A stretch of 64,000 nucleotides of DNA from positions 124,001 through 188,000 of the IMG/VR virus record IMGVR_UViG_3300024308_000302. One strand, written 5' to 3'. The notes below the pieces were generated by a model. It made no database searches. It saw only the letters and a program-made list of their open reading frames with translations, and was not told the DNA's origin. The position numbers were made by a program, and so were the translations under genes. Shown here in pieces: positions 18,645 to 60,121 of this stretch; within the stretch, counting starts at the first letter, position 1; each line of letters begins with the position of its first letter.

Positions 18645-19997
18645 TTAATTTGTAATTACTGCGTGAATCTTCTTCTTTTCAACATTTTCTGGATTTTCAT
18701 GGTCATGTTTTTCTGCTTCAACATGAGCATTATTTGGGTCTTCATCTTTATCAAACAAGAGATTAACCAACTTACCAACAGTCAAACCTTGAATCAGAAT
18801 GGAACCCAGTACAATCACATAAGTCAGCGGAAGCAGAATGTCTTTTTCAGGGCTTGGCGGAAGTGCCAGAACAAGAGCAATCGACACGCCACCACGTAGA
18901 CCACCCCAAGCCAACAATGCTGCACTACCTTTGCCAAAGCCTGTTTCTTTACGAATGCCTTTCATGACAGCCAAAGGCGGAATAACAGTAAGAAGACGGC
19001 TCAGAACCAGCACCACAAAGAGAGTTATAGCAATAACAACATGCAGAACCCCAAACTGTACAACCAAAAGTTCAAGACCAATCAGAGCGAACAACACCCC
19101 GTTCAAGAATTCATCAATTACATGCCAGAAACTATCAACTACACGGTGTGTATCGTCATTCATATGTTTGAATGGCTTGTAACCAAGGCAAAGACCAGCA
19201 ACAACAATTGCCAATGGAGAAGATACATGAATGAAGCTTGCAAGAGTAGCACCACCAACAACCATCATCAAAGTAACCATTACAGCAATGTGTGCTTCAT
19301 GAATAGTTTTAAGCAATCCAACAGTCAACATACCAAGAGCAAGACCATAAGCAATACCACCAACAGCTTCTTGCAAGAACAACATAGATACAGAGCTAAG
19401 GGTTGGTTCACCACCAGAAACAATCAAAGCGAACAAGATAGTAAAGGCAACGATAGCAGTACCATCATTAAACAGTGATTCACCTACAATCGTCACACGA
19501 AGGTTCTTAGGAGCACCAGCTTTGCGAAGAATACCCATAACAGCAATAGGGTCAGTAGGGCTAATCAATGCACCAAACAGGAAGCAATAAAGAATGTTAA
19601 CCTTGAAGTTAAGAGCAGTCAGAACCTGATACGTACAAAAGCCAATGACAACAGTTGCAATCAGAACACCCAAAGTAGCCAAGCCTGCAATAGCCCATTT
19701 ATGAGTTTTCAAATCACTTACGTTAACTGTCAAACATCCTGCAAAAAGCAATGCAGGCAGAATCCAGACCATCAACAATTCATGAAAATTAATCTTGGAA
19801 ATCATGTCAATTGCAGCTTCTTCCAAGAATGGATATCCAAGTTTGCTGGCAGTAAGGATGACAACACTCATCATCAGAGAGCCAAACATCACACCAATGG
19901 CATGTGGTAGTTTGAAAAATTTGTAATTTAGATATGTCATGAGAGTAGTAATGCTCATAAAGACAGCCACAACTGTCAACATTTGATCTGGTTTCAT
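18645..19997 (-). CDS. nhaP: Na+/H+ antiporter, CPA1 family
   Basis: LPALLFAG, ISPTDPIAV, GESLFNDG, WGGLRGGVSIAL; many TM segments. Confidence 0.92.
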   Translation of the reverse strand: MKPDQMLTVVAVFMSITTLMTYLNYKFFKLPHAIGVMFGSLMMSVVILTASKLGYPFLEEAAIDMISKINFHELLMVWILPALLFAGCLTVNVSDLKTHKWAIAGLATLGVLIATVVIGFCTYQVLTALNFKVNILYCFLFGALISPTDPIAVMGILRKAGAPKNLRVTIVGESLFNDGTAIVAFTILFALIVSGGEPTLSSVSMLFLQEAVGGIAYGLALGMLTVGLLKTIHEAHIAVMVTLMMVVGGATLASFIHVSSPLAIVVAGLCLGYKPFKHMNDDTHRVVDSFWHVIDEFLNGVLFALIGLELLVVQFGVLHVVIAITLFVVLVLSRLLTVIPPLAVMKGIRKETGFGKGSAALLAWGGLRGGVSIALVLALPPSPEKDILLPLTYVIVLGSILIQGLTVGKLVNLLFDKDEDPNNAHVEAEKHDHENPENVEKKKIHAVITN

Positions 19998-39040: not shown

Positions 39041-39117
39041 TGGTACAGTCAGGAGGATTTGAACCTCCAACCTTCCTCGGCAAAATGAGGATGCTCCACC
39101 CATTGAGCTACAACTGT
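39041..39117 (-). tRNA. tRNA-like RNA with 8-nt anticodon loop (AUUUUGCC), identity undetermined
   Basis: ACAGTTG/TGACTGT-ACCA, intact D and T arms, stem TCCTC/GAGGA. Confidence 0.65.
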
Positions 39118-39130
39118 AGAAATTAGGTCA

Positions 39131-39213
39131 GGGATGGAGAAACCTCTCAACATCCCCTAGTGACACGCCCCGCGACACCGCTGTCACCTCGCACCCTTTA
39201 GCGGATGCCCCAC
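39131..39213 (-). ncRNA. Structured three-hairpin RNA, copy 1
   Basis: Homologous to 59608..59694 with compensatory changes. Confidence 0.75.
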
Positions 39214-42860: not shown

Positions 42861-43331
42861 TTAAAAACAAGTGAAACGTTTGGTGATTTCGCGGGCTTCT
42901 TCTTGTGTACAAGGCCCAATACCGAGGCCAGTAATAATCAACTGCCCATTAAAATGTGGTGGATAAATATGCCCTCGATCAACAACAATGGCACAAGGAA
43001 TACCCGCTTTACGTGCCAAATTGTAAGCTTTGACAAGTTGATTACTATTTTTTGCCTTCATTGCAACTTTGGCACCACCATTATAAGCATCATTATGCTC
43101 ATTACACCAAACACGATACGCTTGAGCAACTTCTGGTTTATGATGTTCAGCAGAACGCAAAGCATCAGTATAGGCGTGACCAGCCTGCGGAAGAAGTTTG
43201 CCAGTTTCCATCACAATATCAGTACGCAAAATAGCATACTGATAATAATAAGGCTTATCATCTGGCCGACTATTGGCAAGAGCTTGTGCCAAAATATCTT
43301 CTTCGGTCAAATCAATAATATCAAGGCTCAT
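42861..43331 (-). CDS. pth2: Peptidyl-tRNA hydrolase, Pth2 type
   Basis: ILRTDIVMETGKLLPQAGHA...KVAMK...VVDRG...TGLGIGP. Confidence 0.85.
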   Translation of the reverse strand: MSLDIIDLTEEDILAQALANSRPDDKPYYYQYAILRTDIVMETGKLLPQAGHAYTDALRSAEHHKPEVAQAYRVWCNEHNDAYNGGAKVAMKAKNSNQLVKAYNLARKAGIPCAIVVDRGHIYPPHFNGQLIITGLGIGPCTQEEAREITKRFTCF

Positions 43332-55839: not shown

Positions 55840-55914
55840 TGGTGCTAAGGACGGGATTCGAACCCGTGACCATCGGATTTAGAGGCCGTTGCTCTGCCGC
55901 TGAGCTACCAAAGC
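55840..55914 (-). tRNA. Amber suppressor-type tRNA(CUA), copy 1
   Basis: Loop CT-CTA-AA; acceptor GCTTTGG/CCTTAGC, ACCA. Confidence 0.85.
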
Positions 55915-56848: not shown

Positions 56849-56923
56849 TGGTGTTAAGGGTGGGATTCGAACCCACGACCATCGGCTTTAGAGGCCGCTG
56901 CTCTACCGCTGAGCTACCAAAAC
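56849..56923 (-). tRNA. Amber suppressor-type tRNA(CUA), copy 2
   Basis: Loop CT-CTA-AA; acceptor GTTTTGG/CCTTAAC, ACCA. Confidence 0.88.
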
Positions 56924-59198: not shown

Positions 59199-59328
59199 TC
59201 CTTATACTCCATTAGAAAGGTTACAGGCAATTTGAAGATCAATCGCCTACATTTACATTATATAAAGATTCATATTTTTTACAAGGCCGTTTCAACAATA
59301 AATAAAATAAAAATTGTTTTTAGAAAAA

Positions 59329-59436
59329 GATAAACCTCTTCAAACTTACTTACACACATTAACATTAATAGAGCTGCTACCTTCCGGTCCTGACTCGGTT
59401 TTCAATGCAATGTTATAAGGGCCGAAGAGGTCTATC
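59329..59436 (-). ncRNA. ffs: Bacterial small SRP RNA (4.5S)-like gene
   Basis: 108-nt rod with 15-bp terminal helix and domain IV GAG-TCAGGACC-GGAA-GGTAGCAG-CTC. Confidence 0.9.
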
Positions 59437-59523
59437 ATTACAACAACAATAATAACAGAGATTCTAAAATATGCAAGCAAAAAAATAAAAAAAGCCACCA
59501 CAAGGTGACTTTATTTTTTAAGT

Positions 59524-59600
59524 TGGCCCAGCCAGCAGGAATCGAACCTGCAACCGTCCGCTTAGAAGGCGGATGCTCTATCCAATTGAGCTATGGCTGG
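59524..59600 (-). tRNA. tRNA-Arg(UCU)
   Basis: CCAGCCA...CT-TCT-AA...TGGCTGGGCCA. Confidence 0.95.
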
Positions 59601-59607
59601 ATAAGTT

Positions 59608-59694
59608 TGGAGCGGAGAAAACTTTCTCAACACTCCATCAGTGACACACCCCGCGACACCGCTGTCACCTTGTATCCTTTAGCGGATACCCCAC
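59608..59694 (-). ncRNA. Structured three-hairpin RNA, copy 2
   Basis: Homologous to 39131..39213. Confidence 0.75.
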
Positions 59695-59735
59695 TTGTTC
59701 TATTAATATAATCTCATAATCTAAATTAAAAATTC

Positions 59736-59956
59736 TTACTGCATTGGAAGCTCACCTCTGGCACTTATCAACTTTAATGAAATGTGAATTAAATTACTGA
59801 TTTTTACAGGTCATCATGTTCGTCTTTCATAGTAACACCTCTTTTTTAAATATCGTCAAATTCTTCTTTCATTATTTTATCCTCAATATGCTAAATCAAA
59901 ATAGTATCTAATAATATATTAGTGCTGCATTACTGGCTCACCTCCGAGCACCTATC
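59736..59956 (-). other. Cluster of four SD-led minigenes: MQH (59919..59930), MKEEFDDI (59846..59872), MKDEHDDL (59804..59830), MQ (59736..59744)
   Basis: Each ATG has GAGG(TG/A) a few nt upstream and an early TAA. Confidence 0.55.
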
Positions 59957-59983
59957 TAATTTTTTACTTCGTTTGTGTCATCT

Positions 59984-60012
59984 ATTCTAATTTATTCAAT
60001 ATTTGGTGTCAA
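59984..60012 (-). promoter_or_regulatory. Sigma70 promoter upstream of the minigene/ncRNA/tRNA-Arg unit
   Basis: TTGACA-17-TAGAAT. Confidence 0.8.
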
Positions 60013-60121
60013 TCATTTTTTTTATGCGAGAGCTATGATATTTTTCCTTATTTTTCAATTGTTTATCTTGTCTTGTTGATGAGAAGTATACAAAAAACAG
60101 GCATAGGCGTCAAGCATTTTT

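Follow-up and report, generated by a model that had tools for sequence, protein, structure and literature searches.

Conserved arrays of Shine-Dalgarno-led minigenes in a large virus-classified element: candidate decoys for the translation apparatus

Four very short open reading frames (ORFs), each preceded by a Shine-Dalgarno (SD) sequence, lie in tandem on the minus strand of the window, the 64,000 nt stretch of DNA analysed here, which represents genome positions 124001-188000 of a 290,157 bp IMG/VR record. Comparison of the outer two ORFs, A1 and A2, with copies elsewhere in this record and in related elements identifies both as members of a conserved family of strong initiation-site modules. 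The reading of these arrays that we favour, at a probability of roughly 0.45, is that they are bar-like minigenes borne on a decoy RNA, which would act in trans by engaging ribosomes and initiator tRNA as well as release factors and RRF.

The minus-strand unit in which the ORFs are found runs from two promoters, through the four mini-ORFs and a structured RNA, to a tRNA-Arg gene and a terminator (Table 1). The minigenes, translated as MQH, MKEEFDDI, MKDEHDDL and MQ, read exactly as they had been written in an earlier note on this DNA, which was also right both in placing promoter P2 upstream of the array and in describing the outer two ORFs as lying within repeats; these are in direct orientation, ~31-32 nt long and ~75% identical. 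Both are matched by a family model, R1, at genome 183905-183965 (A1, E=4.4e-12) and genome 183717-183771 (A2, E=9.9e-13). When the region was shuffled 5000 times with dinucleotide composition preserved, four SD-led ORFs of nine codons or fewer never arose, the maximum being three, in three shuffles; on the whole 64 kb minus strand there are just five such ORFs, four of which are those at 59736-59956. At the level of the sequence, the four mini-ORFs are real SD-led minigenes and not chance ORFs.

Table 1. Features of the minigene locus (window coordinates) and distribution of family copies in the record (genome coordinates, where so marked)
Feature	Position	Strand	Description
Promoter P1	60085..60113	minus	sigma-70-like, TTGACG-17-TATACT
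Promoter P2	59984..60012	minus	sigma-70-like, TTGACA-17-TAGAAT, 11/12 matches
Module A1	59919..59956	minus	GAUAGGUGCUCGGAGGUGAGC-CAGUA-AUG CAG CAC UAA (MQH)
A1 mini-ORF	ATG 59930-59928, stop 59921-59919	minus	GGAGGTGA, 7 nt, ATG CAG CAC TAA
8-mer 1	59846..59884, ORF 59872-59846	minus	SD GAGGA, 7 nt, MKEEFDDI
8-mer 2	59804..59841, ORF 59830-59804	minus	SD GAGGTG, 5 nt, MKDEHDDL
Module A2	59736..59769	minus	GAUAAGUGCCAGAGGUGAGC-UUCCA-AUG CAG UAA (MQ)
A2 mini-ORF	59744-59736	minus	GAGGTGA, 7 nt, ATG CAG TAA
Three-hairpin structured RNA (~95 nt)	59601..59694	minus	directly 5' of tRNA-Arg(UCU)
tRNA-Arg(UCU)	59524..59600	minus	71.6 bits; co-transcribed with mini-ORF leader
Intrinsic terminator	59491..59512	minus	closes the transcription unit
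Small bacterial SRP RNA gene	59334-59429	minus	RF00169, 58.7 bits; separate from the array unit
Family copies, present locus			two (A1, A2)
Family copies, stand-alone array	genome 58958-59429		five
Family copies, tRNA-linked	genome 36346-36505		two, directly after a tRNA-Arg/tRNA-Leu pair
Family copy, single	genome 32774-32825		one, before a terminator

The 380 nt leader was found to fold no better than its shuffles (z=-0.93). The three-hairpin RNA preceding tRNA-Arg(UCU) has no match in Rfam, and the 21-mer at its core is absent across IMG/VR; a paralogue 85% identical in sequence, in which a U-A pair is replaced by C-G in a compensatory change, is present at window 39118-39213 on the minus strand and likewise precedes a tRNA. 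The neighbouring SRP RNA gene, which is unaccompanied by RNA-library contigs, has a promoter-like site of its own, within an element classified as a virus.

The modules conform to the consensus aaGUGCC-N1-2-GAGGUGA(G/A)C-N5-AUG-C(A/C)G-stop, which spans ~28 nt. Ten copies are found in the record, all on the same strand; with those from AT-rich metagenome contigs and from five IMG/VR records of related elements, 152-437 kb in size, the family totals 46 distinct copies. The further copies came from pattern scans, in which matches in GC-rich genomes and contigs, lying inside genes or at ordinary gene starts, were judged to be chance and excluded from the 46; L045 and L061, each marking the start of a real ORF, are examples of these. 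AGGUG, AUG and the 13 nt register from SD to AUG are invariant (46/46 copies), the SD being GAGGUGA or GGAGGUGA followed by a fixed 7 nt gap and the AUG; the 5 nt spacer and all sequence beyond ~28 nt are unconstrained. Each RNA has 2-5 units with a period of ~100 nt, such that the ~28 nt cores are split by unconserved spacers of ~70-80 nt. The earlier note had named conservation among relatives as a check, and for the outer two ORFs the SD, start and stop are indeed strongly conserved. A blastn search of 50,697 phage records returned matches to tRNA alone, and no close cultured phage was found among them.

No conserved structure was detected in these modules. RNAalifold gave a consensus energy of -0.59 kcal/mol, essentially no fold at all, and Rfam searches of the window and eight related loci, both at the gathering score and at E<=10, recovered only tRNA and SRP RNA, with nothing on the arrays. 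A conserved secondary structure or riboswitch was rejected on the basis of this near-zero energy and the unexceptional folding of the leader. The latter also counts against a leader-peptide attenuator, as do the lack of a downstream protein gene and the distance of ~45 nt between stop codon and terminators. Type III antitoxin arrays are composed of head-to-tail repeats of ~36 nt adjoining an endoribonuclease toxin gene; the separation of the short cores by ~70-80 nt, and the lack of Pfam hits in the flanking ORFs, led to the dismissal of a ToxI-like array. The GUGCCAG 5' flank is identical to the 5' T-stem strand of the adjacent tRNA-Leu(UAA) (genome 36530-36614), probably by coincidence: an origin from degenerate tRNAs was considered on this account and rejected, as the arrays have no tRNA-like score.

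What is conserved, beyond the initiation site itself, is the closure of the reading frame. The first in-frame stop is reached 0-2 sense codons past the AUG in 43 of 45 copies, with equally early stops found in the +1 and +2 frames of only 4/45 and 2/45 copies respectively. Stop usage is 39 TAA, 4 TGA and 2 TAG, and near-identical copies exhibit switches from one stop to another (CAGAACTAA/CAGAACTGA; CAGTAA/CAGTGA/CAGTAG); it is therefore a stop codon that is maintained, rather than a sequence. The invariance of the AUG implies that translation is no mere accident in need of neutralisation. The aligned copies show selection to be frame-specific, acting on the start, the spacing and the immediate stop. 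The SD of the modules ranks with the strongest in the element, one of comparable strength being found at just 31 ORFs of at least 40 codons in 290 kb.

The predicted products of the family are M, MQ, MQH, MQN, MQI, MP, MPY and similar peptides. Three distinct members (genome 59411; G002/G004; G003) are start-stop units, in which a stop comes directly after the AUG, an arrangement seen in none of the mini-ORFs at the present locus. Second codons are CAG (33 copies) or CCG (six copies) in 39/45, whereas in this position in the 286 long ORFs of the element CAG occurs once and CCG never. The last sense codon of the three-codon members varies between His, Asn, Ile, Tyr, Phe, Ser, Leu and Cys. The third codon of these members is mostly NAY (His/Asn/Tyr, 18/26), as read by queuosine-family tRNAs, a bias that may reflect the shared ancestry of subfamilies.

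Near-identical sequence was detected in many public runs. In three that are labelled or presumed to be RNA, two of the three being merely presumed so, short contigs span window 59604-60064, with flanks that are empty or much lower, although these are assembled contigs and not a transcript map. One contig from an RNA-labelled run stops exactly at 59694, the 5' edge of the structured RNA, and another RNA-library contig at 59604, beside the 5' end of the tRNA. The contigs from the RNA runs extend to 60042-60064, further upstream than transcripts from P2 would be expected to start, hence P1 is probably in use. Of the paralogous five-unit array, three units are covered in two of these runs, with word depths of ~40 and 5 and flanks of 0-6. 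The array RNAs, which carry no other coding capacity, appear to be selectively abundant in RNA libraries. The runs with sequence near-identical to window 59300-60100 include several from single organisms, besides those labelled as metagenomes of subsurface, freshwater, food, plant, silage, wastewater and invertebrate origin; therefore the element or its host is widespread, or else is a common contaminant.

Same-strand tRNAs are located within 300 nt of 13 of 24 arrays, and there are at least five instances of a cassette in which tRNA-Leu(UAA) is followed after ~47 nt by an MQH unit, then by another unit and a terminator. In stand-alone arrays, a single strong promoter precedes 3-5 units, with a conserved 3' element and a terminator after them and no tRNA; that each unit might have a promoter was rejected, a single promoter-like site being found ahead of the five-unit array. 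The 3' element seen in relatives (L013:1790-1900; L012, reverse complement, ~590-690; L091:1720-1840) reads CGGUGYGG, a U-run and AAGUGRCAAUUUAACGYCCUCCACC ahead of the terminator, and holds a CCUCC anti-SD-like core; it is duplicated in one relative. An RRF gene (PF01765, 4.7e-50) lies 0.55-4 kb downstream of an array in four relatives, a synteny drawn from related elements that are not independent evidence. One of these four was found through RRF homology alone, its three-unit array being detected afterwards. A gene for a class I (W/Y-type) aminoacyl-tRNA synthetase is directly upstream of the array in one relative. No RRF was found in the window's own record or in the 437 kb relative.

The record is contained within a 1.54 Mb metagenome contig, and its relatives within contigs of 0.44-1.86 Mb. 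It has 35 tRNA genes, all on one strand, including ten tRNA-Leu(UAA), seven tRNA-Met(CAU) and five tRNA-Arg(UCU). No ORF in it exceeds 667 aa, the length of the largest, and most of the ORFs tested have no match in Pfam or PHROG. A search of all six records for Terminase_6N found none, and PHROG gave no structural or packaging hit for the record's eight largest ORFs, one of which matched transposase families; the element is viral by its IMG/VR classification, which is not confirmed. Similar suites of translation genes, with RRF among them, have been described in huge phages and large plasmid-like elements (PMC7162821). Among the other features of the window is a tRNA with an 8 nt anticodon loop at 39041-39117 on the minus strand (ARAGORN anticodon 'tttg'; Rfam 51.8 bits), which may be of a quadruplet or frameshift-suppressor type, or else a variant tRNA-Gln or tRNA-Lys. 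Two further minus-strand tRNAs, at 55840-55914 and 56849-56923, have the CUA anticodons of amber suppressors. TAG terminates 17 of the 286 long ORFs, and reading it as sense lengthens ORFs only modestly, hence recoding of the whole genome is not evident. A 450 aa Na+/H+ exchanger (18645-19997, minus strand; PF00999, 1e-59) is an unusual cargo for a virus-like element.

We propose that each module captures a 30S or 70S ribosome with initiator tRNA, and that the stop would be reached whilst the SD/anti-SD helix is still able to hold the ribosome. Because of this timing the ribosome would cycle or idle on the RNA, which could thereby work in trans as a decoy mRNA, in the manner of a lambda bar-like minigene array. 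Such an RNA would tie up ribosomes, fMet-tRNA and release and recycling factors, with the members of 2-3 codons additionally yielding short peptidyl-tRNAs, and would throttle or re-route the translation apparatus of the host; ribosome occupancy, action in trans and a physiological effect are all things that we infer. A decoy acting in trans is favoured because what the members share is a strong start site and early closure of the frame, not one elongator tRNA. When experimental minigenes are cut from 8 to 2 codons, peptidyl-tRNA drop-off rises and termination falls, and the shorter minigenes are accompanied by greater re-use of the same mRNA, without its leaving the 30S subunit (PMC2490762). 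SD-led start-stops have themselves been shown to bind ribosomes (bioRxiv 10.1101/520783). The net benefit to the element is unclear, as a ribosome held by the decoy is lost to its own mRNAs too. The decoy model also leaves the conservation of the GUGCC flank and the C(A/C)G second codon unaccounted for, these features being outside what any of the models considered here explains. The broader proposal that the arrays constitute 'ribosome treadmill' decoy mRNAs, a viral class that has co-evolved with the tRNAs and RRF of such elements and re-programmes host initiation, termination and recycling in trans, is possible, yet we regard it as doubtful.

A role in cis is suggested by the spatial association with tRNAs, often at the fixed distance of ~47 nt, and by the array at the present locus being the leader of tRNA-Arg. 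STAB-SD elements are known 5' stabilisers, and ribosomes bound to the modules might similarly shield the linked tRNAs and structured RNA, for instance from Rho or a 5'-exonuclease, or help to process them. The strong SD is indeed present. However, the units are repeated, are either internal or 3' of tRNAs and have a conserved AUG and stop; trailer arrays 3' of a tRNA would be unable to block 5' attack, whilst the stand-alone arrays, with their own promoter and terminator, have no tRNA to protect. Nor does a stabiliser require an invariant AUG, a fixed second codon, an immediate stop or 3-5 copies, and we consider such a shield unlikely. It is less plausible still that the core functions independently of ribosomes, either as a sponge or operator for CsrA/RsmA or another RNA-binding protein, or as a pairing partner, with the resemblance to an SD being incidental. 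GUGCC and the G/A-C following the SD are conserved beyond the needs of an SD, and a 3 bp helix around it, (A/G)G(U/C) with (G/A)C(U/C), partly covaries, with 10 double changes, but also nine broken pairs. Frame-specific stops, switches between stop codons and an invariant AUG have no explanation in terms of RNA binding, and the energy of the consensus fold is close to zero. The RsmA/CsrA sponge raised in the earlier note fares poorly in particular: the GGA that CsrA requires is found in ~6/46 copies, and the GCUC/GAGC hairpin then described in 3-4, with no consensus structure.

The earlier note had further pointed to a Pth2 gene, which is indeed present on the minus strand at 42861-43331 (PF01981, E=2.9e-17), and had envisaged a ribosome or tRNA sink. 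In its specific form, drop-off of fMet-Gln-tRNA(Gln) would starve the host of its CAG-reading tRNA, with Pth2 relieving or timing the effect. Lengths of 2-3 codons are those giving the most drop-off (PMC2490762), and in the element's own genes CAG accounts for only 22% of Gln codons and CCG for 5% of Pro codons, each being the rare choice among synonyms. However, no elongator tRNA is used by the start-stop members, and three-codon members end in differing sense codons, which does not fit a sink for a specific tRNA-Gln. The coupling to Pth2 is also unsupported, as the gene is 16.4 kb from the array and searches of four array-bearing relatives, among them the 98%-complete 437 kb record, detected no Pth2 and no Pth1. 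Homologues of Pth2 recur among cultured jumbo phages, and its presence therefore requires no explanation through minigenes; overall, starvation for one tRNA seems improbable. The second codon is open to a different interpretation, in which an initiating ribosome displays C(A/C)G in its empty A site as a decoy or sensor for a RelE-type nuclease. RelE was first reported to be specific for CAG, UCG and UAG, and profiling showed a preference for cleavage sites with C on the 5' side and G on the 3' side; its preferred substrates include CAG and NC|G (PMC5224514), and CAG or CCG is what the great majority of copies have. So far this is a coincidence of sequence only, there being no toxin gene linked to the arrays; the start-stop members do not have the codon, and a substrate is poorly suited to titrating an enzyme, making this interpretation a very remote one. 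A similarly low probability is given to the idea that the inner two ORFs encode functional acidic octapeptides, for instance mimics of acidic protein tails. The two are paralogous, as the earlier note had it, with direct reading of the sequences giving 20/27 identical nucleotides; they are better conserved than the regions upstream of them, and three of the seven differences are synonymous, with the amino acid changes including the conservative substitutions E/D and I/L. However, there are just two sequences, both at this locus, and the synonymous excess is not significant. No homologue of either 8-mer was found in any relative or elsewhere in the data analysed, and model R1 has no match at either ORF. 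They may instead be array units in which the stop has shifted downstream.

Returning to the decoy reading, the closest known analogue of these SD-led minigenes is lambda bar, as anticipated by the earlier note: barI and barII (AUG AUA stop) are phage-borne, have 2-3 codons and end in an in-frame stop. To our knowledge, minigenes since lambda bar have remained a curiosity of the laboratory, with a toxicity confined to cells defective in Pth and no natural role that is known. The likeness extends to short length and a strong SD, the properties that maximise drop-off and re-use of the mRNA (PMC2490762). Unlike bar, the present family is conserved and multi-copy, is arranged in arrays with ~100 nt spacing on dedicated non-coding RNAs, is linked to tRNA and RRF genes, and has a variable last codon, start-stop members and conserved GUGCC and C(A/C)G. 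The start-stops of E. coli detected by Ribo-RET (yecJ, hslR) share with three family members the arrangement of an SD-like sequence, AUG and immediate stop, but are found inside genes, where they act in cis on the host ORF, whereas the family units are in non-coding arrays. CsrB and RsmZ are also non-coding RNAs with repeated SD-like motifs, although their GGA-in-hairpin-loop repeats are absent here. The species 1 and 2 RNAs of T4 and the RtT RNA of the E. coli tyrT operon, the latter derived from repeated trailer units, are small, stable and abundant RNAs released from tRNA operons, with no assigned function; the arrays are comparable in being tied to tRNA genes, and match no such Rfam family. 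The translation suites of huge phages and plasmid-like elements likewise bring together tRNAs, aminoacyl-tRNA synthetases, RRF and further translation genes, and have been interpreted as a means of intercepting host translation (PMC7162821). Those descriptions cover proteins, tRNAs and tmRNAs, but no RNA composed of mini-ORF arrays (PMC7162821), and our search of the literature brought to light no account of conserved arrays of minigenes carried by dedicated RNAs.

The family makes the question of what minigenes are for directly testable, being multi-copy, seemingly highly expressed and under visible selection for its SD, start, second codon and immediate stop. The module is, in addition, a small part of natural origin with which ribosomes might be held on RNA. 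If the treadmill decoy reading were true, minigenes would have a conserved function in nature for the first time, and it would bring an RNA component into the interception of host translation that has been proposed for huge phages.
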